From Eukaryota sp. TZLM1-RC (lineage: Eukaryota; Protista; Metamonada: BaSk clade), in the NCBI GenBank assembly GCA_040285825.1, contig JAUPSS010000008.1, positions 930,001-994,000 on the forward strand: a stretch of 64,000 nucleotides of DNA, given 5' to 3'. The notes beneath the pieces were generated by a model that was given only the letters and a program-made list of their open reading frames with translations, was not told where the DNA came from and searched no databases. How positions within the stretch are numbered: position 1 is the stretch's first letter; every line of letters begins with the position of its first letter. This document shows, piece after piece, positions 3,863-63,748 of the stretch. The position numbers and the translations under genes were made by a program.

Positions 3863-5853
3863 ATGCCGTGTTCCGTCTGCCGGGCGGCCACCCACAACCG
3901 ACGTACTTGTCCTCAGAGACAAGTGTCATCACCAGATGATAATGGTTGGATTCCAGAAGCAGCGCACCACCTAAGTACTGGCTTAAATGAGGGCGAAAGG
4001 CCACTCCCAGTTCCAGTTCGCCCGCCACCAGACCCTCTCCCGTCTGCCACAACCACGACTGTGCCTGTAAGCCTCCCAAGATTCTTTGCCTCTCGTGCTG
4101 CTCAAGCTATTGAGGCACAGCTTATTCACTTACGAGATGTTGCTTTCTATGCCACCTTATTGGCAAGAAGGCTTCTATTAGAATATCCGCATCTGTCCTG
4201 CTGGCTCGCTCACCGTCAATTCTGGTCGCAGTGCTTCGACTGCGTCACCCACAGTCGACCTAAAATTAGGGAGCCTTTCAAGAGCACTAACCCTGATGTC
4301 TATGAGGCTCTTACGCATATGACATCAAGTGCTACCTGGCCGTGGCCTCCGTTAGTAGAGGGCCAAGAACATCCACCCTTTTGTCAGGCTGCTCTTTTTA
4401 GCATTAGAGCTGTTCAACTCGAATCAGCTCACAGACAGCTGCTGACCGATGGCCCTGTGACCTGGAAACTGAATTTCTTCAGGTCTATGGGTAAGCAGAT
4501 GGAGTGTCCTGCTCCATCAAAGTATGCCAGTTGTGTGGTTTCCGGTTCCACAATTTCTGCAAATTTAAGACAATGGTATGAAGAATATCATTTTCATATT
4601 TCCGAAATTTGGAACCAAACAGTAACATCTAATGATTTGTATACGCGTGCCCTGAGGCGTGATGAATTGGATATCACTGTTTAAAATTGTTGGTTGATAA
4701 GCCATTGGGGATTGGCAATTTTACATCGTCTAGAAAGTACATGCCCAAATGTATTTCGAAGACATGCCTTATCCCCAATTGCCACCAAAGTTCCAGGGTT
4801 TGTTCCTTTTAATCAACAAGCTCTGGAATATTTCAAAAAATTGAATCCTAACCAACAATTATTACGGAACCCTTTTAAGTTTTTTAACAAGAAAAAATTA
4901 AAACTTTCTCAATTTCTAGCAATGGACTCTCATTGCGCTTCACTTTTTCAAAGAAACCAAAAAAGACGTGCACCAGGCGAAAAAATTCTGAAATTCAAGC
5001 ATTGGGTCAAAGTCGTCCTTATTTCAGAGAGTCTACTAGAAAACGAAATAAGAGAATAAATGGGCGAGCTAACCGACCGAGGACAATTGCTAGACGGTCT
5101 CAAGATTGCTCGCAGGATCTTCCCATCAGAGAAGACCTTTTTTTTCGTGGCGGTTGATCCAAACCATTCAAATTTATGTGGTTGGACAACTGGACATTGT
5201 TCACAAGAGAATAGGGTAAATGTTGAACAATCTGGAATTCTACTGAATCCGAAGCAAAAGTAATTGATTTTCCCCAGCCACTCACTCAATCCTCTGTGAA
5301 CACTTATTCCGTTGAGAGCTTCAACAGGTATCTCATTGAAATAGCTTCACTGATAAGGAATGATGAGCAGGAAACAATTTCTTTGGTTTCCCAAACTTTG
5401 ACCAATAGTACAGAGAGAATTTTGAGACGAAATAAGTTTGATTTTGTGATAAGAAGACAAAAAAGGTTCATTCATTTTATTAACAAAATTAAGAGACTAG
5501 CTAATAACAGGGAAACTATTATTTGGTTTGGTAATGGTGGTAATGGACCTTCTCGACAATCCACCAAAGCCCCAACTAAGAAGTTTCTGACAGAAGTAAA
5601 GAAATACTTTGCCAATGTGAAGGTTGGAGATGAATACATGACATCTGCCAAAACCAATTGTTGCAAGGTACATCACAGGAAGGTGTATCATAAAGGCACT
5701 CGAAGAATCAATAATGCTTACTTTGAATGTCCTAGATGTGATGAACGCTGGTCTAGAGACATTTCCGCTTCAAGAAATCAGCTAGAGATTGCGATTTCTG
5801 AACATTTTACTGGGATCAGACCAGAGACATTTAGAAGGGAGGTGAGAGAGTGA
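3863..5853 (+). pseudogene. Fanzor (TnpB-like RNA-guided RuvC nuclease), family 1 copy A, with N-terminal CCHC zinc knuckle; disrupted
   Basis: N-terminal CSVCRAATHNRRTC; RuvC-I FVAVDPN; IWFGNGG..APTKKFL; RuvC-II GDEYMTS; Zn finger CC..CPRC; RuvC-III WSRDISASRN; C-terminal RPETFRR. There is one in-frame TAA (4682-4684) and about three frameshifts at or near A/T runs (~4900, ~5140, ~5258). Confidence 0.87.
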
Positions 5854-5994
5854 TAGTTGTTTGTATCCATGTATTGTCTTCGGGCGCTGTGATCCTGAAA
5901 AGGAAACCGTATAAGGGAATGGAGGAATGCTACATGATGTATGGATTTCCGATGAAATTCACAGCCTGTGAATCACAGGTGTATTACAATATTT
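5854..5994 (+). ncRNA. Putative omegaRNA scaffold / right end of Fanzor A
   Basis: GTC-TTCG-GGC hairpin (5876-5885); GCTGTGA (5886-5892) pairs with TCACAGC (5959-5965); GGAAACCGTATA (5902-5913) pairs with TGTATGGATTTCC (5938-5950); CCTGTG-AAT-CACAGG (5965-5979). Motifs are shared with copies B and C. Confidence 0.55.
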
Positions 5995-6021
5995 TCCTTC
6001 CAAAAATAACCTTTCTTCTCC

Positions 6022-7240
6022 ATGGACGCTCATTACGATGAGCTGTTCAAACATCATAATGCAGATAATACCTTTACAGGCAAAAGGATGAGAAAACCAG
6101 TTCCACGCAAAGCAGTAGATTCATCCAGCGCTGCAGCTCTCCGTATGATTTGGAAATTCAGACGAGGAGAGGATGCCCCAGGATCTCTTGCCTCTCTGCG
6201 TCCTCATTCAGATGCATTTAAATTTATGCACCCTGTTTCTTCATTTGCGAGGTACTGTTCTGCAGGAGTCATGCTTCGCTATGTCCACACATGCACAAAC
6301 AAGGAGCGAGTCCCGATCTATTCTGTCACTTATACTCCTGATGCGAGGAGAATCTTTACCGGTACGTACCAAGGAGAAATCACCCTTTGGAATGGTGTTC
6401 AGTTTAATTTTGAGACGATTCTCACAGCTCATTCCGCTGTTATTCATACCCTCACCTGGTCAAAAGATGGGGTTTTCCTCATTTCTGGTGATGGCAGAGG
6501 TGAGATTCGTTATTGGTTATCAAATATGAACAATTTAAAAAAACTACAACCACATTCAGAAACAATTCGTGACATTTCTGTTTCCCATAACAACACTAAG
6601 CTTATTACTGCTTCTACAGACAAAACAATGAAGGTTGTGGATTTTTCCACAACAAATGTTGAACTTGTATTGGAAGGACACAATGCAGATGTTCACTCAG
6701 CCCAATGGCATAATAGATTCTCTTTGATTTTATCATCTAGTAAGGACGGTACAGTCAGATTGTGGGACCCTAGGTCTGGAAATGGTGACTTGTTTACTTC
6801 TTCTCAGCATCGTAATGTTGTAAATGGGGCGAAGTGGAATCCTCATAATGAACTTTCTTTTGCTTCTATAGGCGCTGATGGTCTTGCTTTTAGTTACGAT
6901 ATAAGACAATTACGTACAACAAAAATGACATTTAGAAAACTTAAAAAAGAGTTTTCCTCATTACAGTTTCACCCTATAATACCAAATTATTTTGTTACTG
7001 GGGGTAGCGATGGAACACTAATGCATTGGGATCTCACAAGATCTGAACCCTTACATGTTATAGAAAAAGCCCATGATAATGTTATAAGGTCCATGGCGTT
7101 TCATCCCATGGGTAATGTTTTAGTTACTGGAGGTTTGTCTATCTACTTATCTTATTTCAGCAAATGATCACCACACAAAGATTTGGGCTCATAATCTACC
7201 GGAACATTTGTTACCCAAGGATCAAGAATCTTCTATGTGA
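6022..7240 (+). CDS. WDR33: WD40 polyadenylation factor WDR33/Pfs2 (exons 6022-7132 and 7161-7240)
   Basis: FTGKRMRKPVPRKAVD, YTPDARRIFTG..GEITLWNGVQFNFETILTAH and AHDNVIRSMAFHPMGN. Removing the intron restores TGANDHHTKIW. Confidence 0.92.
7133..7160 (+). other. 28-nt spliceosomal intron (GTTTGT...TTCAG)
   Basis: Its removal restores the conserved last WD40 repeat of WDR33. Confidence 0.8.
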
Positions 7241-7824
7241 TTTTTAGTGCTTTTGTTCAAAACTTTGAAAAGTTTTAGTCCATCTTGGTGTTTCCTTTTC
7301 ATAAACTATTTTATCAAAGTTTCATTCTTCAATTGCACATTGAGTCTATGTAAGTATTCTTTCTACGTTTTGGTTTCATATCTAGTTTGATTTTGCAAAT
7401 TGTTCTAATACCTATTTCTTCACAAAATTTAAATTTATGGATATCACTACAAAAGATGAGATTAAGAACCGAGGGTAATGAAAGAATGGCTTAATAATTT
7501 ACTATTTTTATTAAATGGGTGCTCATTTAAACAGATATTGTCTATAACAATCAAATAAGTTGCCTATGACAACTGAGTTGAGAAGGGAAATGTTTTCTTC
7601 TTTTTTGATTTTAAATACTTTGATGAAACACGTGAAGGGTTTCACTACTGCTTTCAGAAGAAATGATGTTCACCAGTTTGCCGTTTTCACAGCAATGTTT
7701 AGAGGAAGTGACGGCTGTTAGAAGAGTACTCAGGTCCATCCTGATACAAGGAAAAAGTAGTGTGGGATTTCTTTTATAGTTTTCTGAAGTGAAAAAGCAT
7801 AAAAAGAATAGTATAAGGTTCATT

Positions 7825-9912
7825 ATGTATTCTATATGTATCCTTGCTATTCTATGCCTAGCTTCTGCTCTGACGCCTGACCATTCCAGCCGTACCTTTT
7901 GGGGCACTTATAAACCCGGACACTTTTTCGGTGTTCGATCTCGATCACCGGACAGTTTTCACTTTGGAGTTGCATGGATGTCACTCTCCGATCCTCAGGC
8001 CCTGTCGAAGATCCGCCACGAATGTACAAAGAATGAACTCGATTCGGGGATCTATCTCACCTACAAACAACATGACTTCTTCAATTTTGCCGTTGAAGAA
8101 ATACTAGATCATGAATATAATTTAAACCTCACTATCTCCTTTGTCAAAACTAACGATTACAGTGAATGGTCTGTTTCTGTTGAGACTGCCCCCATAGATT
8201 CCACTAAACCTTTGTCAGTCATTTCTATTTTTCCATATATCAGAGGACCTCATGATATTTCAATCACCCCCTTCACCCTTTCAAATGGACATAGAACACC
8301 ATTAGCCAGTTTTTCTCAGGCTTCTGGTGAATACCAGTTCCTGGTCGTTTCCCCCACTGATGTTAATTTTGATTTAGTTTCATTTCCTCCTGGGTCTGAA
8401 AGTCTTTTTTCTCAACAAATAGCACATTCTATTATTGGTGACAAAAAGAATCAAATCACTGGACTGTTGAGCGGTAAATACAAGAGTTCTGGAAATCTTT
8501 TATTAGCACAAGTATTATCTAAAGGTAAAATGAAATTCAATTGTTTATTGTTCAAGGATAATCAAATGGTAACTGATGGACTAATATCTTCTAGAATTAA
8601 CTCAATGAAGACCAAATTGACCAACGATAATGAAGCTTTCTCTCTCCAATTTGATAATTTATCCAACTCGCATCGTGCCCTGGCCATGAGCACCCTCTCC
8701 AATCTCTATGGAGGGGCTGGTTACTGGTATGGACATTCCACAGTATCAGAGAGAACCAAGAAGGGGTCAACTAGTTTATATGCAACACCAGACGCTGAAC
8801 ATTTTTCATTCACACCTTCTAGGACCTTCTTCCCACGAAGTTTTCTCTGGGATGATGGTTTTCATCTCATGGTGGTTGCAAAATATGAGCCATTACTTGC
8901 AGCAGATGTGATCAACTCATGGATTTCTCTTATAGATGAGACTGGTTGGGTAGCAAGAGAGCAGATTTTGGGACCAGAGGCATCTTATAGAGTGCCTTCA
9001 GAGTTTAGAACTCAGTATAAACATGTATCTAATCCTCCAGCATTGATAATGCCAGTAGTTGAGTTATTTGATCAGCTTAATGAGGGGAGCTTCACTCATG
9101 ATGAAGAACAAATCATAAGACAAGCTTTGAAAAAGTGGCTTCCAAAACTTTCTCAACACCTAAAACAAATAAGGAAACATTGCTACAAAAAGAAGACCTG
9201 GACTTGGCCTGATCGAGACCATAGTCACTGCTTGTCTTCTGGGTTGGACGATTATCCAAGAGGAAAATCTCTGTCAGCTCAGGATTCTAATGTTGATCTA
9301 GTTTCATGGATGTGTTGGGCTCATGGGCATTTGCAAAGAATGTCTACTGTTCTCAGTGAAGGGGTTTATGAATACCCCAAAGCTTTGATAGATTGCAGAC
9401 AAAACTTGGTTGATTTTCATTGGTCTGAAAAACGAAAGTTCTTTGGTGATGTTACATTCAAGGATGATAAGAGAATAGTTCTTGCTTACCAAGGTTATGT
9501 TGGACTCTTTCCAGTGTTGTTTTGCCACTTAAACGCTGATGATTCGAGATTAAGTGATGTTCTCAATGTTGTACTGGATGAATCAGCTCTCCTCTCTTCT
9601 GCAGGTGTGCGATCTCTCTCCAAAACCTCCAAGTATTTTGGCACGGGGGAAAACTATTGGAGGGGTCCTGTTTGGATTAATATAAACTATTTGTTGCTCA
9701 AGGCCCTCCGTCAATGTTATTGGGATAACAATCAGGCAAGAGTAGCTTATCAATCAATTAGAGAACGTATAATTACCAATATTAATAATGATTATTCAAA
9801 AACAGGCTATTTATTCGAACAATACAATCCAATTGGCGGAGAAGGACAAAAGAATTACCCATTCTATGGTTGGTCATCTCTTGTGCTTAACATTTTGAAC
9901 GAAAGTTTTTAA
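7825..9912 (+). CDS. MOGS: Mannosyl-oligosaccharide glucosidase (ER glucosidase I, GH63)
   Basis: Signal peptide, then FWGTYKPGHFFGVRSR, PSRTFFPRSFLWDDGFH, GWVAREQILG, LSSGLDDYPR, YWRGPVWININY and EQYNP...PFYGWSSL. Confidence 0.93.
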   Translation: MYSICILAILCLASALTPDHSSRTFWGTYKPGHFFGVRSRSPDSFHFGVAWMSLSDPQALSKIRHECTKNELDSGIYLTYKQHDFFNFAVEEILDHEYNLNLTISFVKTNDYSEWSVSVETAPIDSTKPLSVISIFPYIRGPHDISITPFTLSNGHRTPLASFSQASGEYQFLVVSPTDVNFDLVSFPPGSESLFSQQIAHSIIGDKKNQITGLLSGKYKSSGNLLLAQVLSKGKMKFNCLLFKDNQMVTDGLISSRINSMKTKLTNDNEAFSLQFDNLSNSHRALAMSTLSNLYGGAGYWYGHSTVSERTKKGSTSLYATPDAEHFSFTPSRTFFPRSFLWDDGFHLMVVAKYEPLLAADVINSWISLIDETGWVAREQILGPEASYRVPSEFRTQYKHVSNPPALIMPVVELFDQLNEGSFTHDEEQIIRQALKKWLPKLSQHLKQIRKHCYKKKTWTWPDRDHSHCLSSGLDDYPRGKSLSAQDSNVDLVSWMCWAHGHLQRMSTVLSEGVYEYPKALIDCRQNLVDFHWSEKRKFFGDVTFKDDKRIVLAYQGYVGLFPVLFCHLNADDSRLSDVLNVVLDESALLSSAGVRSLSKTSKYFGTGENYWRGPVWININYLLLKALRQCYWDNNQARVAYQSIRERIITNINNDYSKTGYLFEQYNPIGGEGQKNYPFYGWSSLVLNILNESF

Positions 9913-20873: not shown

Positions 20874-21009
20874 TGTTGTACTGTGGACAATTAGTCTAGT
20901 ACATTTATGTTTATATAACATAGTTCACTAGTGATGGCCTTTATAAGGGCCGGTGAAATTCTAATAAATTGTTCCTTATTCTTTGTTATCATATATGGAT
21001 AAATCATCA
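20874..21009 (+). repeat. 5' LTR (136 bp)
   Basis: Direct repeat of 27647-27782, with 4 mismatches counted by eye. Confidence 0.95.
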
Positions 21010-23349
21010 TTAATTAATGGCCTGAAAAGCCACAATGATAACCCTCCTTCCTTTCTGAGGAAGAGTAATGTCGCTTCTTTGAAGGAGAACAATCCACCAC
21101 CCACGGTGAGTAATCCTCCACCTACGGAGAGTAATCCTTCCTTCGGGAAGAGTAATCCTCCTAAGGAGAGTGAGCTTTCCACTGAGAAGAGCCTTGCCTC
21201 TCAGAAAGAAAGCCACCTCCCCAATAAGGAGAGTGAACTTCACACTGAGGAGAGCCCTTCCTCCCAGAAAGGAAGTCACCTCCCTAATAAGGAGAGAGGT
21301 AACCACGTTGTGGATGTGACAGAACTGTACACATATCCCAATAACTCCTCGGAGCTCCTTCCTTGTAGGAAGAGTTTTCTCACTCCGAGCGAGCAACGGA
21401 GATTCAAAGCGTTTGTTGTAAGTAATAAATCTGACGCTTGTACAGAAGGTGAAGGAGGCGAAGGCGAGCAACAGTCTACGACTAGCTCCTCACGTAAAAC
21501 TCCCTCCTCACCTACTTCTGACATCAGCTCAAGTGAGGAACCTCAAAGTGATTCCAGAGGATCTCTTAATCAGAACTACAGCAGGAAAGGGGATCAGAGC
21601 GATGATGAACCACCTCATACACCCAATCCTCCTAATCCAACTCCTAGTTTCCCATCTACGGAAAAGACTTCTCAGGGTCTTTACCGAAGGAAATTAGCAA
21701 AGGCAGTTGAGGCTGTAACTAGAGATTTCTTATTGGACCTCATCGCCAATCCTCCCGAAGATGTAATGGATTGGAGTGATAACGAATTATTAAAAATGGC
21801 TGAGAATGAGTCAGAGCGTCTTGCGAGAGACGTAGACCCAGCCGAATGTGAGAAGGTCCGACGTGACTATTTGGCGAAATGTTGGCCCTTCCTCTTTGGG
21901 AAAGCCCACGGCAAAACACTTGACGACGTCGTCTACGAGAGTTATGATCAGAGTCCAAATCTTTTGAAGAAATTGGATGATCTTACCGATTCGGCAGTCT
22001 CGTGTGGAATAAGTGCAGTCGAGGATTGCTATTTCAGCGCTCATCGTTCAAAGTATCAAGCTGCTACTCCCAGGCCTGCCAAATGGCATAGGGATGCAAT
22101 TGATGACCACAAAATATATTTCAGTGGAAATCAAGAAGCTTACGACAGACTATTTTGGATAGCTAAAATGTACCCTCATAATCAACAAGGTAGAAACCTT
22201 AGAGGCGTCGTAAGGCATTTTCTAGTGGAGAATGTACACCCAAAAGATTCCATTGCGGACATTTTTATTATGCTTGGGGGCAGATTCGATGAATCTCGAG
22301 GTGACACCCTTCAATTTCATACCAAAGAGTCCTATATTAGAGAAATAGGCACAAGGGTAATTGAATTGAAAGAGCAACGTGTTGGCCCCAACAAGTTAAA
22401 ACTAGTATACCCTGATGCATGGATGGCTAAACTCAAGGCATGGGTTGATAGCTGGCCCGACCAAAATGTTTTTGAGAATGTCTTAATAAAGAGCAGTTGC
22501 CTTCCATATGATCACAAACTAGCAGGGGTCCCTAAAGGATCTAAAGATGCACCAGATTGGGTGGATTTAAGGCCACCAGCCCAGACCGTACCTGTGCAGG
22601 AGGAACCTCCTAAGACAAGATTTATCATTAAGTTGGGCGAAACATTGCCTTCAGAAGAGAGGAATATGAACCTATTTAGTACACCTTCTGTAGGGCCTCT
22701 GGCATCTAGGAGAGCTTCTTGTGAAGCAACTCCTACACAAGCATCTGTTATAAAATCATCTATACCCACGCAACCCCTAGGAACGAATGCTCCTAGAGAT
22801 TCTCTCGTCGATACCCTCGGTCTTTATAGAACTCCTGTAACAGACGAGGAGAAATTGAGGAAAAGAATAGACGACAAACTGAGATGCCTAGTTAAGTTAA
22901 ATGAAGCGTTTGACGCCAAGAAGATCTTCGACTTCGTTCTTAACTTTGGCAATTGGGCTAAAACAGTTAGGGATCGCGATGGACCCACCAGAGCATTTAC
23001 GCCAATCACCAAATACGGTCAACCTGTTCATCAGTACGACTTCGTTAGATCTATGTTCTTCGAAGTGGACCCTTTGTATTTGAGATTTATGATCGAGGGT
23101 AAGGTGATCGCAGAATTGCAGAGTTTTTATGGAGGCCGAACAAACGTGTTAGGCAACAGCCCATCTGACGCCGAAATCTGGAAATATTTGCTACTCAGCA
23201 CCCAGTACAAATACCCTACCGATGTTGAGAAGGCTTTAAGGTCTGTAAGACCACCTGAGATCAGTCGCAAAATGACTGCTGAATCTTCATGGACAGCCTT
23301 CATGGAGCAGATCATATATATAATTCGACGCTCTACAATTATGCCTTGA
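20995..23349 (+). CDS. gag: gag-like ORF; ATG lies inside the 5' LTR; ends at a TGA that is in frame with pol
   Basis: Long ORF with ESNPP-type and ~60-bp tandem repeats near the N-terminus. The frame stays open after the TGA into 23425. Confidence 0.75.
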   Translation: MDKSSLINGLKSHNDNPPSFLRKSNVASLKENNPPPTVSNPPPTESNPSFGKSNPPKESELSTEKSLASQKESHLPNKESELHTEESPSSQKGSHLPNKERGNHVVDVTELYTYPNNSSELLPCRKSFLTPSEQRRFKAFVVSNKSDACTEGEGGEGEQQSTTSSSRKTPSSPTSDISSSEEPQSDSRGSLNQNYSRKGDQSDDEPPHTPNPPNPTPSFPSTEKTSQGLYRRKLAKAVEAVTRDFLLDLIANPPEDVMDWSDNELLKMAENESERLARDVDPAECEKVRRDYLAKCWPFLFGKAHGKTLDDVVYESYDQSPNLLKKLDDLTDSAVSCGISAVEDCYFSAHRSKYQAATPRPAKWHRDAIDDHKIYFSGNQEAYDRLFWIAKMYPHNQQGRNLRGVVRHFLVENVHPKDSIADIFIMLGGRFDESRGDTLQFHTKESYIREIGTRVIELKEQRVGPNKLKLVYPDAWMAKLKAWVDSWPDQNVFENVLIKSSCLPYDHKLAGVPKGSKDAPDWVDLRPPAQTVPVQEEPPKTRFIIKLGETLPSEERNMNLFSTPSVGPLASRRASCEATPTQASVIKSSIPTQPLGTNAPRDSLVDTLGLYRTPVTDEEKLRKRIDDKLRCLVKLNEAFDAKKIFDFVLNFGNWAKTVRDRDGPTRAFTPITKYGQPVHQYDFVRSMFFEVDPLYLRFMIEGKVIAELQSFYGGRTNVLGNSPSDAEIWKYLLLSTQYKYPTDVEKALRSVRPPEISRKMTAESSWTAFMEQIIYIIRRSTIMP

Positions 23350-26300
23350 ACGGATGGTAATCCGTCTGTCGTCTACCCAGCAAAGAGATTTCTCGAAACT
23401 ATTAACGACAAAACAAACAATCAATTGATGGACACATATATCATTTGGATTGGCAAGTTTGATTCAAGTAACGAGAAACTGGGCGATGCGATTTACGATT
23501 TAGGTAACGCATTTGTTAACAAGGTCAATAGCCTTGAATCCTCGACCAAAGACATGAATTTGATAAGAACAGCTTTTGGTGCTCACGCTCCTGCGCAAAA
23601 AGGACGAAGCCAGTCAAAAGGTCCTTTTAAGAACCCTAGAGTAAGCAGTCGACCCATCCCTTCAGAGCAATGGTGTAACTTATGTAAAACCAATAAACAT
23701 CCTGAAGAGAATTGTTTTAAATTAGTGGGAAGACCTGGTTCAAAAAAGCGTCAAGGAGGTCAAAGACGTGATAGAAAACGTAAAAGTAGTAGTAATAAAT
23801 CAGATGATTATACATCTTTTAACAATAACCTTACAAATAATTCAATCAAATCCATTTATAAAATGAGCAAAACAGATTCGAATTATAATCACCTAAATCC
23901 ATTTAAAAGATTTAGAGAGTCATCCAATCCTGTGGGTTCTATCCACAGTGTTAGACTATCCAGGGTAGCAGAGGACCAAGAAAGTTCTAACGGGGAACTT
24001 TGGTTAACCTGCACCATAAATAACGTGGAAGTACAAGGCGAAATTGATAATGGAGCTGCATTTTCAGCATTATCAATGGATTTAGCCTCTAAATGTAATA
24101 TGACAGTTAATGACAATAAGACTGTCGAATACTTATCGGCAAATGGTATTCGCTCCACGACCCTGGGATGTGCAAGTGGTGTTCTTGCTCTAAATGTGGG
24201 TAGCTTGGCCATTCAAGTGTTTTTAAGGATCGAATTCCAGATCATTGCTGGTACCAATAATTTTTTGATCGGAAGAGACTTATTACAAACCTTGGGGCTA
24301 CGCACAGAGCACGGTTTTAATATTAATTTGGATCGCGAACATCGCACCATCTTAAATGCTGAATGTGAGTTCGATAATAGAATTTGTCAACCAATTAGAT
24401 TCATTGAACAATTGAGTAATAAATCAGACTTAGGTAATGATTTTGGGCATTCCACATTTAGACATGAGTTAGATGAGTTGGGCTGTAGATTATGCCTGGA
24501 TGACATTAGGGACAAAGAACGCCTAGTGGTGCTACTCGAAAAATATAGAAATGTATTTAGTGGGCTACCTCACCCGGATGGAATTGATTGTCAGCCGATG
24601 ACCATTCCATTTTATGACGAAAGTAAGGTCGTCAAAAAGAAACCTCGAAGATTAAACCCAGAAAAACAACGGGTAGCCGAGGAAATTTTTAACGAATTGA
24701 TCCGTAATGGATTTGCTGTGCCCGCAAAGTCTCAATTCAGTAGTCCCATCTGTCTTGTGATTTACCCTGATCACAGGAAACCACGATTAACTGGCGATTT
24801 TAGTGGTATTGGTGGAGTAAATGATTTAACTAAACCTGTAGAGACAAATTTGCCCAGGATTAGCGACATTTTAGAGTTTCTAAGTAAAGCTAATTATATA
24901 GCAACTCTAGACTTACCTAAGGCATTTTGGCAGCTCAAAATTGCAGAAGAGGATATTGATAAAACTACCGTATCAATTCCCGGGATGTCGATCAGTTTTA
25001 AAAGGGCTTGTTTTGGTTTGAAGAACGTTCCTGCAGTCTTCCAAAACATGATGATGGAAATATTTGATTCTGAGGGCGTATTTATTTATATCGATGATAT
25101 AATAATAGTAGCTTCGACCCTGGATGAATTTCTATCTAGAGTAGGTACGGTCCTAGAACGCGCCAAACGTTTTAGAGTTAACCTTGGCCTACCCAAGTGT
25201 AGCTTCACCACTTGCAAACATGAAATAAAAATTCTAGGTAGTATTTTTGTAAACAAAACCCGTTATATAGATGAATCTAGGATCGAGGGACTGATCAGCC
25301 TACCCAAACCCAGGACATTACCTGAAGTTAGGAGTTTTATAGGTTCAATCAATTATATACGTGACTGGTTGCCAAATTTGTCTGACTTGATAGAACCAAT
25401 CAGCAAATTAACCAGAAACAAACCGTCAAAAATCAAGTGGACTCCTGATCATGACGAGGCTTTTGGTAAGATTATAAATCTTATCAAAGCAAATATCCCT
25501 CTTGAATTGCCCTCAGAAGACAAGCATATTTTAATAAGTGCTGACGCGTCCGATGTGGCTGTAGGTGGAGTAATATGGCAAGAAGCTAACCCACCTAAAG
25601 ATCCTACGACACCGCTAATTAAGAGAAAGGTTGTACCTATTGCCTTCTTTAGCAGATTATTATCAATTTCACAAAAGAATTGGTCTGAACTTCAGAAAGA
25701 GTTGTATGCAATTTTACTAATTCTCACTGACAGTAGTTTAGAAAATTATTTAATTTCGAGGAAATTAACTATTTTCACTGATCATAGAAATTTAGCATAC
25801 CTCATATCAGCTCCTGAAAAGAACAGAATTGTGAAGAGGTGGCTACCAATATTGTCAGAATTCAATTTTGATGTAGTCCACACTGCAGGCGAGGAGAATT
25901 ATTGGGCAGACATGTTGTCTAGATTGGTTGACACCAAACCCAAAACTCCTCGAGTCCAACAAGTGAGAAACTTGGCACCTCACAGAGTTGAAGAACAATT
26001 ACTCTATTTAAATTTATTAACTAGAGTTAATTTGTTAAGGGATGATATTACTCAACCGTCCACAATTGAGCTACCCACGATCAATAGCTTATCTGCACTG
26101 AAAGAAGCAGTTGAGGATACTAAATTTGATTTATTTGACACTTGGATCTCAAAGATTAGGCAAGAACAACTTATAGATGTTGATTCCAATTTTGATTATT
26201 ATAAAGATTACAATTATAATTCAGATATTCAATTGTATACCAACAATCGTGGGAAGATTGTCATCCCAGATAGTTTAAAGAAGCAGACTTTAACTATCAT

Positions 26301-27646
26301 TCAAGGACATGCAAATGTTGGCCATCCTAGTGTGACGACTAGCGTAAAGAAATTACTCAATAGTGATTACTTTTGGCCCGACATGCGCAAAGACATGATT
26401 AACCATATTAAGAGATGCCCAGCATGTCAAAAGACGGCACATGTGCCTAAAAATGTCATTGAATCATCTGGCTCTCTTTGGGCTGATCGACCTTGTGCAC
26501 GATTAAACGCAGATACTATTGGACCATTACAACAAGATGATAATGGATTCAAATATTTAATAGTTTTTGTAGACTCGTTCACCAGGTATACGATCATTTG
26601 CCCTGAAAAGGAATTGAATGCAGTGGAGGCAACCAATCACCTCCTATGGAGTGTAGTATCAATTTTTGGTATCCCACTGTTGATTCATAGTGACAATGGT
26701 ATTGAATTTGCAAATGCCATATTCAAAGGGTTATGCGATTTATTAAACAATGAAGTAAGTCGTTCACTAACTAGCTTTTCACAAAGCAATGGTTTAGTAG
26801 AAAGAACGACACAGAGACATTTTACAAAGTCTAAGAAAGATTTTGGTGGACTCTGGCGATTATAGCAATTGGAGTGAATATATCCCAATTGTACAACTTC
26901 AAATCAATTCAACTATTAGTAGAGTTACTGGTCATTCGCCCTACAATTTAATGTTTGGTAGCGACCACAGCCCTAGAGCTGATCCTAGTAATATGTTTGA
27001 ATTAATAAAATCAGCTAATGTTAATATTCCCTTTGTTAAAGATCTTGAAGCAAAACTGGAAAGGATTTCAAAGAAGAGAGAAGAGGCAGAGCTCAGGCAA
27101 GCTCAACAACTGCCTGAAGTTAACAAACATAGGAACCCTTTTAATAAAGGTGACTTAGTTTTGCGATTAAAGACTAATGGTAAACTCCATGGTTGCTTCG
27201 CTGGCCCTTTTCTCGTTGAAGAAGTTAAATCCAATAAAAGTTTATTACTCAAGAATCTTGTCACTGGTTCGATGTCTACGGCAAGTATAAATCATTGTAA
27301 ACTATACCTTTCAGACTTCCCTAAAGAAGATCTTGATTGGCATAAGAATATTGCTGCTGGCGATATGGAAGAATCTGTAATCGTTAAAATTATAGATCAC
27401 TTTGATTACGTAGATTCGAACAATAATAAAGTTCCTTATTGTACCGCAGTTTGGTATGGCGGCGAGACTTCGTCTGTCCCAGTTGCTGACGTCAAAAGCA
27501 CTGAGGCATATCAAACATATTTGCGCTCAATTAGTCCTCACACTACCAGGAAACGGAAGGCATCTTCTAATTCCAAATCTAAGACTAATTCCCCTGCAGT
27601 CAGTACTCGTAGCTCTCGTTCGAGACCTAAGAGAGGGAAAAGGTAG
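23350..27646 (+). pseudogene. pol: NC zinc knuckle, protease, RT, RNase H, integrase and chromodomain-like C-terminus; +1 frameshift near 26806
   Basis: CNLCKTNKHPEENC; IDNGA; LDLPKAFWQL; YIDDII; DASD..GG, KELYAI, TDHRNL; H..H..CPAC; DTIGP, SDNGIEF, SNGLVER; GPF; VKIIDH..YCTAVWYGGETSSVP. An extra A turns ERRHRDIL into ERTTQRHF. Confidence 0.92.
27629..27646 (+). other. Polypurine tract
   Basis: AAGAGAGGGAAAAGGTAG immediately precedes the 3' LTR and also encodes the last pol codons. Confidence 0.85.
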
Positions 27647-29545: not shown

Positions 29546-30244
29546 CTAGATGTTGAGAATTTGACGTTCTGCTTCATTCAATAAGCTCACTAATTCTAAC
29601 CTCTTTACAACCAGCCCAAGTTTCTTTCTAGTTCTCCTCCAAGAGTGAATTACAAAAGCGTTAACTAATCGCAAACCTGCATTGGCTTCAACTGGACTAA
29701 AACAAGATGACGCTACCGAGCAACTCCTCTCACCAGGATTAGCTACTTGACCCAAAGTTTTGAAGTAATGATCATAACTATCAATTAAACTGGAATATTG
29801 GGTACAAAGACGAGCAAGATCAGAACGAAGATCTTTGATAGTTCCCTGTATTCGGAGCAACCGCTTTTCGAGAACCTTTTGCCTCCATTTTCGCATGCAA
29901 TCGGTGATGTTAGCCCGGTGTATGCTGTGAAGTATGAAAAAAGACATCCTTCTTTGGTGTTCAAGAATTTCTGTTTCTTTCAACGACATAACAGAGTGGA
30001 TCTCGGACTTGAGGAGACTGTTTTCTTGCTGGAGTTCCAAGAGCCTCCGACCGATTTCAAAAGTGTATTCTTGAGAACCATGTGCAGAGAATGAAGGTCG
30101 TGAAGAGGGCCATCGAACTGTTTGTGAATCAGGGGTGAGCTCAGGGGAGAGTTCAGACAAATCATCATATGGATGATGGGGATATGGTGGAGGGGACATG
30201 TAACTGGGACCCAATATGTTTCGAACAGTTTCAGTAATGGTCAT
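29546..30244 (-). CDS. Hypothetical coiled-coil protein
   Basis: 232-aa ATG ORF with a Pro/Ser-rich N-terminus and heptad-like segments (RLLELQQENSLLKSEI). Confidence 0.65.
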   Translation of the reverse strand: MTITETVRNILGPSYMSPPPYPHHPYDDLSELSPELTPDSQTVRWPSSRPSFSAHGSQEYTFEIGRRLLELQQENSLLKSEIHSVMSLKETEILEHQRRMSFFILHSIHRANITDCMRKWRQKVLEKRLLRIQGTIKDLRSDLARLCTQYSSLIDSYDHYFKTLGQVANPGERSCSVASSCFSPVEANAGLRLVNAFVIHSWRRTRKKLGLVVKRLELVSLLNEAERQILNI

Positions 30245-30295
30245 ACACTAAATTGCCAGTGTTTGAGTTCATGAGTGTCATCAAATGGACAAATG

Positions 30296-33200
30296 TTATT
30301 GACAAATTGACAAATGTGATGAAGGTGGGAAATACCCATAAGTACACAGATACTGAGGCCTTTCATTACCACTCATTCAAGCTTCAGCAATCGCAAACAT
30401 ATTCAAACAAGCCAGCTTATTTCTATTGAAAAGCTTTGTTGAGCCTTTGTTACTGAGTTTGCAACTTTCACTGTTACAAGCTAATGAACCATGACATGTA
30501 GTAACTGGAGTCTTTTCTCTTCTATAGAATCTGAGATCTGTCACTCTCAAAAACGTAGCAACCTTTTCAAAACAAACAGGACATTTTGCTGAAGTGAATG
30601 CTTCATTAACCATCAATACTTCAAATCCATTTCTTTTCAGAAATTGAATCCATCAATGCCTCGAGTAGGTCTCTGATGTTTCAAATTCTTGGAACCTTTT
30701 TTACCATAATCACCCATTAGAATTAAAGTGTCTTTTGCATTGCCAAACTGCTGAACAAGGCTTTTTAACAACCAACTTTCAGTCTTTTGCTTGTGAATAA
30801 AAGCTTGCATTTTATGAATGCTCCACAAGTCAAGACTGTAAAACTCAATTGTCAAAAAAAACTTGCCGAAGTTTGGCAACCACAAAGTTGGAATAATCTA
30901 TAAAAGTTGCTGAATTGGCAGCAAAGGTGGATAATTCGGTGTTTGCATCTTCGATTGTCTGGTTACTGTCTTCCTCTGCCACGGTATTTTGGGTCGCCCA
31001 TTTTGTTTGTTTTTCATTAATTCCAATTTTGAAAGACCAAGACATTTGGGTCATTCTCAACCATTTGTACTTCTTGTCCTGATTCATCACCCGACTATTT
31101 CTTTGTTGTTCGGTTTCATTTTGAGGAACCATGGCCTATTCTTGATCAGTCTTTTTACTCGCAAAGTATAATAAATTACATTTTCCAGGATCACATACAA
31201 CTATTCGTTTATCGAAAATTTTCAACATCATCAATATACAAATCAGAAAGACTGGCATTGTTGTCTGGCTTTCATTTCTGCTCTTCCAAATTTCGACGAA
31301 CGAATTCCACTGCAATATTGTAACCATTTATGTGGATAATGTTGTTGAATTTATAGCTCTTCTGTTTGAACATTGGTTGGTTTAAATCGAGAATATTATA
31401 CCATGATTCAAATTGCTGATGTGGTTTGAATTTCGTAACTTGGGCTAGTGTATTGGATATTTTCAGCGTCTGTGTAGGTGGTAAATCATCAAATAATGTT
31501 TGCTTAATAATTCTCCATAATGTTCTTGTATCAATAGGAAAATATCCAGGGCCTACAGTGGTTGAAACAGGAGAAATATGATAAGGCTTTCTCTCTCTAC
31601 TGAAGATATATTGGGCAATTGTAATTGCTGGATTTAGGAATAATTGAGGATCTTTTTCAACAGCGTCTGCAAGAAAATGTATATCCACTGGAAATATGTT
31701 ATCAACTGAATTCTCGTCAGTGACAAAATTCTCAATTTGACAAGTAAATGGCTCAATAAGACCTTCAAATATGTCTCTAAGTTCATTGTTTCTTATATCA
31801 TGTTGTTCACATAATTCGAAAAATTCATCATTCAGAAGGTCTGAAATATTTTCAGGGTGATGAAACAAAGAACTCAAACAATCTCTATCATCAACTAAAA
31901 ACAAGTTTTTGAATTGGCGAAGTCTAAATCTATATAGTAAAATAATTGTAGATAATGGCGTTGAGTATCCACCTAGCTTGTGCATTGCTGCTAACACATT
32001 TTCCACATCTACTTTGTCAAAGTAAACATTGATAAATCGATTAATATGTTTTTCATAATTTAGTTTCAAATTGTTCTCAAAATTGGTAAACATTACTGGG
32101 GCCATGTACTCAGGTGATCTACTAAATCCATCAGTTGGAAATCGTGGAAAAAACTCAGGCCTACATCTCAAATGGTCTACATAACTTATAGTTTTGTTCC
32201 ACTTTTGTTGTTCAAAGGTGGTCGATAATCTATAATCTCCTTCACCATAAACAAAGTTTTCAAAATTTCGTGGAAATGCACTTTTTGGTTTCATTATTTT
32301 TTGCCCATAATACTCAGCTGAAATATAACGAATTCTGGCCATTAATGATTCATATAATTGGAATATCTTTACGATATTCATGGTGGTTTAAAATTACGTT
32401 CAAAACAAGACTGTAAATACAGCTTTAAACAACAAGTGGTGTGAATACGTAACTGTTGAAATTTTAAAGCAGTTTCTCTAAATTTGTCTATCACATTCGA
32501 ATGTTTAACCATTGAGTTGACGGTCGCTCGAATGGTTTTATAAGATGATAAAATAAATTTGTCTTTCTGAAACAGCACAACAAGTTTCAGACAAAGGAAA
32601 CAATCATGAAGCCCTTATTGAATCGAATTTTGTCTCAGAGGAGAAGTAGCCAACCAATCAATTGGCAAAATATGGGAAAATTGCTGATGAAGTTTGATTT
32701 TCTTTTCATTTATCATTTTATATGCTAGATTGGCTAATCCATGTGGGTAGGGTATTTTAATAAATCTTTTGGCAAATACCAAAGTATCTAAAAGAAAAAT
32801 GCCATTTTCCCTGATGACAACTTCTCTCCATCTCGGTGAAAGTTGATTGAGTACATCAATTGCTGTATCATCTGGAACAGTGGGAAAAGGTAAATCAAAA
32901 TAATATAATCTATTTTTTAAAACCTGTAAATCAAACTGTATTAAATTGTGATTAAGAAGACAATGGGGTTGATGATTACCAATAAGGATTAAGAACCTAC
33001 GAAGCAAGCTTTCTTCGTCAGAGAAAATTTCTGCCTGAATACCCATATCAATGTCTGGTAATCTGACTTGAGGACTCATTCTCAATATAAGTGAATACTT
33101 ACTCTCCAAAAAGAAATTGTAGCAATCAAACTTACCAATAACAATCGAAATTAAAAACACTTTTTGATCTGAAATCCACTTAACCCATTTGCTCATCAGT

Positions 33201-33917
33201 TTTCTTTTTCAAAAGATTTACACCCTCTTTTCTCTTTTTGTTGATAATCTCGTCAGAAGGGAGAAATTGGCCATCATGATTTTGGTAAAGCTAACCATCC
33301 TGATAGGTTTCAAGATCAAAGCACATAACAGTGGGAAGATTTTGATTTGAGGTCATTGATTTGAATTGAATCAATGGATCAGGCTTGAAGCCACTAAGAC
33401 TTGGCTCAATTTTTCTGACCATACTCGGTTTCAATGGTTTTTTTGTCAAAATCTTCCTGTTCTCGATATTCAACGTTGTATTCTCAATACAAATTTCACG
33501 GCTCAGTGCTTTTTTTTGTATTTTTTGCATACGCTTTGATGTTTGTTGGTCAAAAATCGCATTTCTAATAATTGTTGATGGAGGAGTTGATTTAAAATTA
33601 GATCTTCTCTTTCTGGGACCAGGATTTGCTTCAACATCTCCATCCTTTGTTAAATCAACAGTATATGGGTTTGTTGATAGAAGTTGTTGGCAGCTACTGT
33701 CTTGAAAAGATAAATTATAAACATAATAATCAAACTCAACACTATTAAAATAACAATTTAAGACACAACATCCCATATCTAAAGTGCAAGTATCTAAACC
33801 AAAAAAATCAACAAAATCAAAAACATCAAAGTAACAACAATGTAAAACAAAACATAAACAAGAACAACATCCCATATCCAAGGTGATTATCACCATGGCT
33901 AATTCAATAGCACCCAT
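30296..33917 (-). pseudogene. Fanzor family 2 copy 1: 2A peptide, NLS, PolB-type 3'-5' exonuclease and Fanzor RuvC in one decayed frame
   Basis: DVEANPGP-RKRR; ExoI CFDLET; ExoII NHNLIQFDLQVLKNR; ExoIII (Y>stop)GLHD, in frame with the Fanzor N-terminus SYKTIRATVNS; IDTRTL; RuvC-I VCDPG; LMGDY..PTRGI; RuvC-II VNEAFTSAKCPVC; CHGSLAC..C; FNRNKLACLNM; ERPQYLC. Confidence 0.85.
33615..33656 (-). other. 2A-like StopGo ribosomal-skipping peptide DLTKDGDVEANPG/P
   Basis: Exact match to the G-D(V/I)-E-x-N-P-G-P consensus, with the upstream DLT often seen in viral 2As. Confidence 0.8.
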
Positions 33918-33949
33918 ATTGATAATTTTTTTGTAGACTTATTTGTTTG

Positions 33950-34052
33950 TTAATCACCGATTAATTTAAGATTAATCGCGATAATCGTGATAATCGATCG
34001 GACAAAGATATGACCATCCGATTAATCGACGATTCGATTTTGACAAGCCCTG
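33950..34052 (-). mobile_element. hAT-like transposon terminus with subterminal repeats
   Basis: The minus strand begins CAGGGCTTGTCAAAATCGAATCGTCGATTAATCGG at 34052, followed by clustered (GA)TTAATC(G)/GATAATCG repeats. No partner end was found. Confidence 0.55.
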
Positions 34053-59065: not shown

Positions 59066-59126
59066 TTGCTAAACTGTTGAACAAGGTTTTTTAACAACCA
59101 AACTTTCTGACTTTTACTTGTGAATA
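59066..59126 (-). mobile_element. Short relic of Fanzor family 2
   Basis: WLLKNLVQQFSN matches 30740-30800 and 63480-63530 at the DNA level. Confidence 0.6.
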
Positions 59127-60851: not shown

Positions 60852-61749
60852 ATTTCTCTTGTATTTTAGTTTCTGTATAAATTTAAAATTATTTAATTTA
60901 TTAACTTATTATTGTTCATTGCTTCAAACATCAACTATGATTTTTGATGATCATTATCAGTATTAGTTTCAAGTTATTTCTTTTGAGTGGCAAACATTAT
61001 ATAAAATAGACATTAAAATTGGTAGTTAAAACTATGGTGTGATCCCTCCTTCCACTGTTTCCAAGAATGTTGTCATTAAAAGTGTAGTCTCATTGAAGGG
61101 AAGATGGACCAATTATTAGGTGTCAAAAATTTCTCCCTTATGGCCAAAAAATGCTCATTAGTCTATTTGAATCAATTTCTGTTGAAAAAAAAGAAAAAAA
61201 AACACAATGACATGAACCCAAACTATTATTTCAATGGTAAAACTTTCACCTACAATAAAGACCATGTACAAAAATCAACAATACTGTATTTGAAAACAAT
61301 TTGAAATTCTAATTCATATACAAAAAAGAGTACCGTGTGTTTGCTGAGGATGTCCCTACACGGTATCGGAAGAAGAATCAAACTAAAGGTAAACAAACCA
61401 TATGTATAGCAATATTTTTCATTTTGATTGGAATTTCCATTGTACCCCCATTTTCTCCAATGTTTCGTCAATCGCTTCTCATGTTGATCTTTGTTTCCAT
61501 CTCCATTCGCATCCCACACCCCCACTACGACTACTTCCACCACCACACCACCACTGTAATTTGTTCATTTACTGATCCCTTATTTACTGTTGATAATTCA
61601 GAGGTTATTTTTGCTGAACAATCACTCATCATTCTCAAACTCTTGTTGGTAATAACAATGCAGATGTTACCTTCTCTAATTTTGATGTGCTAAATTCACA
61701 AGCTTCGGGAAATGTTAAATTAACCAATTCTAAATTTACTACAACTAAA

Positions 61750-63733
61750 TAAGGTCCTGCTAAGTTGTGGTGGTTTTAAGCAAGTTGAAATCAAAGAACA
61801 CTAATCAAAATCTTCCTATGGTTATGTGTTTTGATCTTGAAACATATCAGGATAATTATTTTCACCAATATCAGGAAAATCAAGTTCTTCCTCCTAATCA
61901 GATCATCAACAAAAATAAGAAAAATGATTCAAATTTTTGGAAACAAAATGATGAAAAGTTGGATGAATGGATTTCAGATCAAAAAGTGTTTTTTACTTCG
62001 ATTATTATTGGTAGGATTGATCAACACAATTTCTTTTTGGAAAGCCAATATTCGTTACTATTGAAGAAGAGTTCCCAAATTACGTCTTTACATGAACTTG
62101 ATATGAATATTCAGGCAGAATTATTCTCTAATGAAGAAACTTTGCTTCACAGATCAAACGTTATTGGCAATTATCAACCATATTGTTTATTGAATCACAA
62201 TTTCATTAAATTTGAATTACAAGTATTGAAAAATCGATTCAATGCATTCAATTTACCATTACCCACTGTTCCAAATGATCCAATGGTGGATGTACTCAAT
62301 CAATTTTCACCAAGATGGAGAGAAGTTGTCATCAGGGAAAATGGCTTTTGTCTTTTAAATACACTGCTATTTGCCAAAAAATTTATTGAATTCCAATATG
62401 GACATGGCTTAGGCAATACCCAGTAATACTTACCAATTTTTGAGAATATTTTGGTATTTCCAGTGGTGAGAAATATAGTATAATTTTCATTTTCTTGCAG
62501 ACGCTGTTGAACAAAATTCTCAAGTATAACTAAAACCAGCAATTACAATTGTCCAATATATTTCCAGTAAAGAGAAAACCTTATCATATTTCTCCTGTTT
62601 CAACCACTGTAGACCCTGGATATTTTCCTATTGATACAAGAACAATATGGACAATTATTAGACAAACATTAATGGACGATTTGTTGCCTGATCAGAGATT
62701 AAAAATGGTCAATAATCAAGATCAAATCCATAGATTCAAACCACCTGAGCAATTTCACTTTTGGTCTAACAAAAGATTTATAAATTCAACAACATTATTC
62801 ACACAGATTGATTTAATATTGCAGTAGAATTTGTTCGTCAGGATTCACAAAATTAGAAATGTAAGCCAGACAACAAGGCTAGTATTTCTAATTTATATAT
62901 TGATGATGTTGATATTGAGACTTTTCAAGACAAATCAATTGTTGTTTGTGATCCTGGAAACATGATTTATTGTATTTTGAGAGTAAAAAAAACGGATCAA
63001 GAATTAGCCATGTTGCCTGAACATGAAACTGAACAGCAAAAAAATAGTCGGGTGATGAATCAAGAAAAGAAATACAAATGGTTGAGAATGGCTCAGATGT
63101 CCTGGTCTTTAAAAGTAGTATGAATGAAAAACAAAAACGATGGGTGACAATGTATACTGGGGTAGATTACAACAGGAACCAAATGATATAGTCTAACGAA
63201 ATGACAATTGAAGATGCAACCAATTCAGTTGCTGCCAATTCAAAATTGGAATTAATGAAAAACAAACAAAATGGGCGACCCAAAATACCGTGGCAGAGGA
63301 AGACAGTAACCAGACAATCGAAGATGCAAACACCGAATTATCCGCGTTTGCTGCCAATTCAGCAACTTTTATAGAGTTCTCAAACTTTGTGGTTGCCAAA
63401 CTTCGGCAAGTATTTTTGACAATAGACTGGTATATTCTTGACTTGTGGAGCATTCATAAAATGCAAGCTTTTATTCTCAAGCAAGAGACTAAAAGTTGGT
63501 TGTTAAAAAACCTTGTTCAAAAGTTTGGCAATCCAAAAGACACTTTTATACTAATGGGTGATTATGGTAAAAACGGTTCCAAGAATTTAAAACATCATCG
63601 ACCTACAAGAGGAATTGGATGGATTCAGTTTCTGAAGAGATATGGTTTTGAAGTATTGGTTATCAATGACGCATTGATTTCAGCAATATGTCCTGTTTGT
63701 TTTGAAAAAGTTGGAACTCCTTTGAGAATCAAC
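61750..63733 (+). pseudogene. Fanzor family 2 copy 2: exonuclease-Fanzor, internally deleted, chimeric and 3'-truncated
   Basis: NQNLPMVMCFDLETYQD...LLNHNFIKFELQVLKNR...GHGLGN jumps to HFLADAVE, then KPYHISPVSTT..GYFPIDTRT, VVCDPG, LMGDYGKNGSKNLKHHRPTRGIGW and INDALISAICPVC. Confidence 0.85.
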
Positions 63734-63748
63734 AACGTTCTTTTAAGA

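Follow-up and report, generated by a model that had tools for sequence, protein, structure and literature searches.

An exonuclease–Fanzor fusion encoded behind 2A peptides in a multi-copy mobile element of Skoliomonas

Fanzors represent the TnpB/Cas12 lineage in eukaryotes and are under development as compact genome editors, and laboratories fuse exonucleases to guided nucleases to alter repair outcomes. In the literature that could be searched, we found no natural exonuclease–Fanzor fusion: the primary Fanzor papers (Bao & Jurka 2013, Saito 2023, Xu 2024) leave an exonuclease unmentioned, and papers naming both Fanzor and exonuclease are, by title and abstract, reviews or engineering studies with no natural fusion. 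2A-like (StopGo) peptides are known from RNA viruses and non-long-terminal-repeat (non-LTR) retrotransposons (PMC3708506), and no report of them in Fanzors or DNA elements was found. Here, we analyzed a 64,000-nt window (positions 930,001 to 994,000 of contig JAUPSS010000008.1, assembly GCA_040285825.1) from strain TZLM1-RC, the type strain of Skoliomonas litria, an anaerobic free-living metamonad from a Tanzanian soda lake (PMC11603281; PMC11316075). On its minus strand, at 33917..30299, the window holds one dead copy of a Skoliomonas-specific mobile-element gene that exists in multiple copies. The dead copy reads, in order, leader, 2A peptide DLTKDGDVEANPGP, RKRR, a family-B polymerase (PolB)-type DEDDy exonuclease and Fanzor1. 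We show that the exonuclease–Fanzor fusion is a real feature of the living gene family to which this copy belongs.

A first-pass annotation, made from the window alone, had proposed this minus-strand chain, and every motif that it named was located (Table 1). It had allowed for "a few" stops and frameshifts; we counted about nine interruptions, of which four are in-frame stops and five are frameshifts. With these, and with its normal stop codon gone, the copy is a pseudogene. The Skoliomonas assemblies were built from error-prone long reads (PMC11316075), and single-base frameshifts therefore need caution; the in-frame stops are exempt from it.

The separate open pieces of the window copy served as queries, each searched on its own. 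An exhaustive HMMER search with the longest piece (31272-32381) matched 44 proteins, the close matches all coming from Skoliomonas strains. Relatives are given below as P numbers for proteins and L numbers for loci, and the second strain compared is the sister strain TZLM3-RCL. In the searches made, the fusion was found in Skoliomonas only, these being the HMMER search with 31272-32381 and a word-based search with the exonuclease region of P0009, which returned TZLM3-RCL paralogues only and is blind below ~50% identity. Viral contigs searched with the exonuclease piece yielded no relative.

The raw DNA of the relatives carries the fusion without interruption. At L001 of TZLM3-RCL, a 1296-codon open reading frame (ORF; 4986..8876) contains ExoI, ExoII and ExoIII followed by a complete Fanzor with RuvC-I, RuvC-II and RuvC-III; in P0009 (1281 aa), the protein of the gene at L001, the exonuclease profile PF03104 lies at 369-504 and the chain continues to the Fanzor C-terminus. 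A 980-codon open frame at L010 runs from the linker through ExoI-III to the end of the Fanzor, and a single 927-codon frame at L012 holds 2A, C48 protease, ExoI-III and the Fanzor N-terminus. Translating L003 and L004 gives exactly P0046 and P0047, with frames open across the junction. Intact relatives with one continuous ORF, which the first-pass annotation had proposed to look for, thus exist at L001, L010, L003 and L004. One intact locus spans JAUPST010000003.1 505,132-509,112. Its further claim that exonuclease and Fanzor share a frame fails for the window copy, where a frameshift at 32387-32381 is required to cross the junction, and stands for the family: P0001, a paralogue with 82% identity encoded in the same genome as the window, crosses in frame, as do more distant relatives. 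Five subfamilies (the window, P0009, P0088, P0048/P0011 and P0063 types), ~30% identical to each other, share the architecture and are under purifying selection, so that the fusion extends well beyond decayed copies.

In the window copy, the exonuclease frame ends in a TGA overlapping the ATG of the next frame (ATGA, 32381). An arrangement of two ORFs with ATGA coupling was considered and is ruled out by the continuous ORFs at L001, L010 and L012. Several GenBank models span single frameshifts with 25-30-nt "introns" (L007 9676-9704; L011 3160-3229 and 5109-5211; L010 2881-2884). Because the assemblies are nanopore-based, some of these bridged frameshifts may be assembly errors, and the copies concerned may thus be intact.

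Profile searches placed the exonuclease half among PolB-type domains, as had been expected. PF03104 (DNA_pol_B_exo1; gathering threshold 23 bits) matched the window copy at 32615-33196 (E 3e-8, 33.8 bits) and scored above threshold in seven proteins, the relatives reaching 35-52 bits with E values down to 6e-14. ExoI DxE, ExoII Nx2-3(F/Y)D and ExoIII Yx3D are all present in P0009, P0047, P0048, P0063, P0088 and L008, and the five catalytic residues (DxE, NxxxFD, YxxxD) are kept in all intact subfamilies. Since relatives read YC.QD at the ExoIII site in the alignment, the window's TAA sits on the ExoIII Tyr, as the first reading had it; one paralogue contig carries T>A at 32615, giving TAT (Tyr) on the minus strand. 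The best PDB sequence matches of the P0009 exonuclease half were Pol delta catalytic subunits, and its ESM Atlas matches were PolB exonuclease clusters. The polymerase domain PF00136 (palm, fingers, thumb) had no match in any window piece or relative scanned, and Fanzor homology begins only ~100 residues after ExoIII (first SpuFz1-aligned stretch of P0009); the exonuclease–Fanzor protein is therefore not a polymerase, in agreement with the earlier remark that neither a polymerase nor a transposase domain is visible. Among three 96%-identical TZLM3-RCL copies, the ratio of nonsynonymous to synonymous substitution rates (dN/dS) was 0.13-0.19 for the exonuclease, 0.16-0.30 for REC, 0.25-0.34 for the RuvC/zinc-finger region and 0.44-0.63 for the low-complexity N-terminus. 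The exonuclease, with the lowest values, is thus the most constrained part of the protein.

The other half is a Fanzor by sequence and by predicted fold, and the expected RuvC nuclease was recovered. In phmmer searches of the PDB, the C-terminal half of P0009 matched SpuFz1 (E 1.2e-29) and Parasitella Fz1 (PpFz1; E 3e-26), and the window's Fanzor pieces align to the same relatives (P0009 and kin) that match Fanzor1. In an AlphaFold2 (AF2) model of P0047, the Fanzor part reached a predicted local distance difference test (pLDDT) score of 80-95, and Foldseek retrieved SpuFz at a template-modeling (TM) score of 0.75-0.78 (E 3e-27), followed by PpFz and GtFz (9cer, E 1e-17) and then by Cas12f and TnpB (8h1j, E 2.6e-4).

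All sequences compared retain the RuvC-I Asp and the relocated RuvC-II Glu. RuvC-III is Asn (WNRN) in 7/7 Skoliomonas sequences, whereas 18 other Fanzor1 relatives have RD and none has Asn; in alignment, the Asn falls on SpuFz1 D606, a catalytic residue that coordinates metal (PMC10432273). Of the motif that Bao & Jurka 2013 described as strictly conserved (D...[TS][TS]xxC4 zinc finger...RD), the D, E, TS and C4 are present, and RD has become RN in all seven sequences and in the window copy. GtFz1 natively carries Asn (N658) at this site and cleaves DNA, and SpuFz1 D606N is more active than the wild type (Xu et al., PMC11423790). The RD rule is therefore outdated, because GtFz1 is active with Asn, and the possibility that RuvC is dead on account of this residue was rejected. 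By analogy, the Skoliomonas Asn is best read as the known active GtFz1-type D-E-N triad variant and not as a dead site.

The 2A core GDVEANPGP occurs once in the six frames of the whole window (33641..33615) and recurs in L005, L007 (twice), L008 (twice), L011 and L012. As the first-pass annotation had placed it, a 2A stands before exonuclease–Fanzor genes elsewhere in the same genome (P0063, P0066) and in the sister strain (P0053, P0087, P0089). Four independent instances show at least five codon third-position differences, all synonymous, and zero amino-acid changes in the core. The 2A peptide is a real feature of the family, and ribosome skipping is predicted from the motif. That annotation overlooked the RuvC-III Asn and a Ulp1/C48 cysteine protease between two 2A sites: L007 and L008 of the window genome read leader-2A-Ulp1/C48 protease-second 2A-KKRK-exonuclease-Fanzor. 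Intact members often carry one or two Ulp1/C48 domains, and the second 2A occurs in one subfamily. PF02902 (C48; threshold 20.7 bits) matched P0087 with two domains (E 1.9e-18, 67.5 bits) and P0089 at 21.9 bits, and the C48 His (HW) and Q..DCG-type DCG motifs are seen in L011 and L012. No C48 protease lies upstream of the window copy's 2A, which corresponds to the one directly before the basic motif and exonuclease and shows 55% identity to that region of P0063. The basic RKRR that follows is likely a nuclear localization signal (NLS).

Leaders before the first 2A are hydrophobic, T-rich and mutually unrelated, and the simplest reading is that the 2A would shed whatever is translated upstream. 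The "Cys-rich leader" of the first-pass annotation exists as a frame that starts at an ATG; its DNA is T/G-rich and of low complexity (31-mer pile-up at 33658-33965), and it may not be a true domain. In an intact gene, the leader peptide would be released separately by the 2A.

Copies that are 96-98% identical, with sharp ends, lie at unrelated loci. The unit starts 26 nt before the start codon in L001 and 59 nt before it in L010. In three subfamilies, 49-59 nt separate the stop codon from the end of the unit. Neither a transposase nor any second ORF was found within the 4-5 kb unit in the copies read. A hairpin follows the stop by ~15-25 nt in each of three subfamilies. The 3′ tails of L001 (8877-8935), L005 (7580-7631) and L007 (11728-11776) are unrelated in sequence and yet laid out alike, with a T-rich spacer followed by a hairpin of 6-7 bp (loop of 5-6 nt) and then by ~20 nt to the end. 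The 3′ tail is a candidate right end, and it would fit an omegaRNA scaffold that overlaps the end of the ORF and takes its guide from the flank, as TnpB of IS200/605 does.

The 5′ part of P0009-type copies (L003 1830-2437; L001 5089-5250) contains a tandem 87-nt repeat encoding a 29-aa unit, SPVAADGILQKNCFDATRLQLPSLPAAPES, whose copy number varies between copies. At L003, ~4 kb including a DEAH-helicase ORF separates this repeat-bearing part from the rest of the element. The S. litria loci L007 (3890-5547 and 12228-13394) and the flanks of L008 and L009 are dense in further Fanzor fragments and in reverse-transcriptase genes.

We consider it somewhat probable that intact members produce a StopGo-released NLS–exonuclease–Fanzor in which guided RuvC cutting is followed by 3′-end trimming by the fused exonuclease, a mechanism that we infer from the parts. 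Ribosome skipping at NPG/P would discard the upstream product and free the NLS–exonuclease–Fanzor protein, which would enter the nucleus and bind an omegaRNA derived from the element's 3′ terminus. Under omegaRNA guidance, the D-E-N RuvC would cut matching DNA, and the fused exonuclease would then trim 3′ ends at the break. Because a Fanzor would cut ~15-20 nt from the insertion point, trimming might remove a short non-homologous 3′ tail, so that the end could serve as a primer for copying the element or could no longer be re-ligated exactly. In yeast break repair, Pol delta proofreading removes short non-homologous 3′ tails from invading ends. The fuller claim, that intact members are working omegaRNA-guided nucleases in which a cis-fused Pol-delta-like exonuclease, 2A-expressed together with a Ulp1 protease, processes RuvC-cut 3′ ends, is offered tentatively, as possible but short of probable.

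The exonuclease might instead act on DNA independently of RuvC cutting, degrading a displaced strand or nascent 3′ ends or serving a transposition step. Such a role would suit a unit without a transposase, a tight fusion in which no long linker separates ExoIII from the Fanzor N-terminus, and an exonuclease that is the most constrained part; however, a 3′-5′ exonuclease needs a free 3′ end, for which the RuvC cut is the obvious source, and a D-E-N triad that is active in GtFz1 gives no reason to assume that RuvC is silent. We regard this as rather unlikely, and give slightly less credence still to an action on RNA, in which the domain would trim the 3′ end of the omegaRNA or process the element transcript into a guide. 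The RNA trimmers RNase D, Rrp6 and Nibbler are DEDDy proteins, and an element ending 49-59 nt after its stop must have any omegaRNA cut from the 3′ region of the mRNA. Yet the closest relatives of the domain are the DNA proofreading domains of family-B polymerases, TnpB-family RuvC domains are reported to process their own RNA unaided, and the guide would lie at the omegaRNA 3′ end, where 3′-5′ trimming would eat it.

It is very improbable that the exonuclease is what is left, without function, of a polymerase gene captured from, for instance, a Polinton-like or viral element that brought in the cysteine protease as well. A PolB-derived domain beside a clan-CE protease does recall Polinton/Maverick gene content, and no polymerase domain remains, but five catalytic residues are kept across ~30%-identical subfamilies, the dN/dS of 0.13-0.19 is the lowest in the protein, and the best matches are to Pol delta and not to protein-primed PolB. 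Least credible of all, and already refuted, is an artefactual adjacency of two separate genes or of chimeric gene models. The TGA/ATG overlap in the window copy and the GenBank models that bridge frameshifts might have suggested it; against this, the raw DNA of L001, L003, L004, L010 and L012 is open across the junction, P0001 is in frame there, and a public-run contig from a paralogue is 8 nt shorter at 32362-32372.

Several points weigh against the cut-and-trim mechanism, or against the evidence assembled for it. No locus read is intact from the 2A through the Fanzor C-terminus, so that continuity was pieced together from overlapping intact stretches, and part of the frameshifts may be errors of the long-read assemblies. 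The structure prediction proposed by the first-pass annotation succeeded for the SpuFz-like Fanzor part and was poor over the exonuclease of P0047 (pLDDT 35-60), because the alignment is shallow, with only four to five sequences covering it; the model did not place the exonuclease relative to RuvC. A 3′-5′ polarity differs from that of canonical resection for homologous repair, and engineered fusions of TREX1, TREX2 and T5 exonuclease impaired MmeFz2 (PMC12923547). No transposase was found that would move the unit. RNA folding of the 3′ ends was not significant overall (z -0.5 to -2.4), and the public runs held short paralogue contigs, 90-95% alike, none of them over unique flanks and none from RNA, and gave no omegaRNA evidence.

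Table 1 Features of the decayed exonuclease–Fanzor copies in the window
Feature	Position in window	Strand	Remarks
Leader ORF	33657..33917, ATG 33917	-	Hydrophobic, Cys-rich; comparable hydrophobic leaders before 2A in P0053, P0089, L007, L008
2A/StopGo-like peptide DLTKDGDVEANPGP	33656..33615	-	Core GDVEANPGP 33641..33615
Basic RKRR	33614..33603	-	Immediately follows the 2A proline; P0063 has KKRK at this position; likely NLS
DEDDy exonuclease domain, PolB type	32560..33323	-	PF03104 and alignment to intact relatives; broken by TAG 33293-33291, frameshift near 33200 and TAA
ExoI CFDLET	33323..33306	-	
SDEESLLRRF	33022..32993	-	
ExoII HNLIQFD	32950..32930	-	
LLDTL	from 32794	-	
ExoIII as TAA + GLHD	32617..32603	-	TAA 32617..32615, GLHD from 32614
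Fanzor1-type part, WED/REC to C-terminus	30344..32559	-	31272-32381 matches full-length relatives (HMMER); broken by frameshifts near 32385, 31300, 30870, 30645 and stops 31138-31136, 30379-30377
RuvC-I VCDPGK	31198..31181	-	
RuvC-II NEAFTS and zinc finger CPVC...C..C (CxxC...CxxxxC)	30607..30461	-	
RuvC-III NRNKLAC	30427..30407	-	
C-terminal RPQYLC	30361..30344	-	
3′ tail	30245..30343	-	Normal stop after YLC lost, frame runs on to 30299; candidate omegaRNA/right-end region
In-frame stops	33293-33291 (TAG), 32617-32615 (TAA), 31138-31136, 30379-30377	-	
Frameshifts	near 33200, 32385, 31300, 30870, 30645	-	
Second decayed copy, same subfamily	61767..63739	+	Without leader or 2A; 3′ truncation inside RuvC-II
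Second copy, ExoI CFDLET	61827..61844	+	
Second copy, ExoII, D>E	62196..62216	+	
Second copy, internal deletion	62417 to 62488	+	Mid-exonuclease to mid-REC

The second copy in the window keeps its parts in the order of the first and is in frame where the first has its first stop and first frameshift. Just 5′ of it, at 61627-61746 (+), a 40-aa stretch is 70% identical to the L008 region upstream of the first 2A, and the copy may for this reason once have had a longer 5′ part. A third, tiny remnant of 61 nt (59066-59126), 88% identical to the Fanzor region 30740-30799, lies between a giant gene and the second copy. The giant gene, at 34104-58826 (+), encodes 8240 aa in a single ORF without introns; the product begins with a stretch resembling a signal peptide, has long repeats rich in Ser, Thr and Gly together with EGF-like Cys motifs, and ends with a transmembrane segment at the C-terminus. 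The ATG of this gene and the leader ATG of the decayed Fanzor are on opposite strands and only 187 nt apart, and giant genes adjoin other family copies too (7382 aa in L005, 3705 aa in L007); leader and upstream regions showed no similarity to the 8240-aa gene. On the other side, an annotated 232-aa gene at 29546-30244 (-), with a Pro-rich start and then a coiled-coil-like region, starts 55 nt past the last position of the decayed Fanzor frame, and its ORF has a letter-perfect match on contig JAUPSS010000008.1. The other loci compared contain no relative of this gene, which is therefore probably a host gene that adjoins the element at its 3′ end. A Ty3/gypsy-like retrotransposon occupies 20995-26865 (+), with a 1145-aa product containing Asp_protease, RVT_1, RNase H and integrase (Pfam) and a 784-aa ORF upstream.

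With these results, the range of Fanzors comes to include Metamonada (skoliomonads), and that of 2A peptides a new class of element. A fusion of the kind that laboratories build was here made and kept by evolution, and its RuvC site carries the Asn variant that raises SpuFz1 activity. Should the protein prove to be a working cut-and-trim editor, it would be the first enzyme of the Fanzor/TnpB family with a second catalytic nuclease domain, and 2A polyprotein expression would be seen for the first time in a DNA element, beyond the RNA viruses and retrotransposons. The family offers a natural model for how end processing serves a guided selfish nuclease, how a eukaryotic DNA element expresses several proteins from one message, and how transposase-less Fanzor elements spread.

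Among described Fanzors, the closest comparison is Fanzor1 of Spizellomyces punctatus (SpuFz1; PDB 8GKH, 9CEU), to which the Skoliomonas proteins are homologous along the entire Fanzor length, sharing RuvC-I D, the relocated RuvC-II E in an xEx.TS motif, the C4 zinc finger and the C-terminal RP.YL tail. Unlike SpuFz1, they carry a ~300-aa N-terminal DEDDy exonuclease preceded by 2A, NLS and usually a C48 protease, they have Asn for D606, and their elements have a 3′ tail of ~50-60 nt with no flanking transposase or terminal inverted repeat seen. With GtFz1 of Guillardia theta they share the Asn third catalytic residue and a matching fold, but GtFz1 is without exonuclease, 2A and protease. Because the Skoliomonas proteins are nearer to SpuFz by Foldseek score, their Asn may have arisen independently of that of GtFz1. 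Bacterial TnpB of IS200/IS605 is comparable in that the guided nuclease is the sole gene, its 3′ tail is short and the RuvC/zinc-finger core is shared; with so short a tail, a guide scaffold would have to overlap the ORF end. The Skoliomonas element differs in being eukaryotic and three times larger, with extra catalytic domains and StopGo expression.

The exonuclease has ExoI DxE, ExoII NxxxFD and ExoIII YxxxD in common with the proofreading domain of family-B polymerases (Pol delta, PDB 3IAY; PF03104), along with above-threshold Pfam scores, yet stands alone before the Fanzor, without the N-terminal, palm, fingers and thumb domains. The idea of a tethered exonuclease acting on guided cut ends is common to engineered fusions (TREX2-Cas9; T5 or TREX to Cas12 or Fanzor), which are artificial and use DEDDh (TREX) or 5′-3′ (T5) enzymes, whereas the Skoliomonas fusion is natural, PolB-type DEDDy and under selection. 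The 2A peptides of non-LTR retrotransposons, as in Trypanosoma L1Tc/Ingi and APE-type animal elements, show the same D(V/I)ExNPGP near the N-terminus of a mobile-element ORF (PMC3708506). In Skoliomonas, by contrast, the peptide belongs to a Fanzor-bearing DNA element of a metamonad, and in one subfamily it occurs twice, bracketing the Ulp1 protease in an arrangement that resembles a small viral polyprotein.

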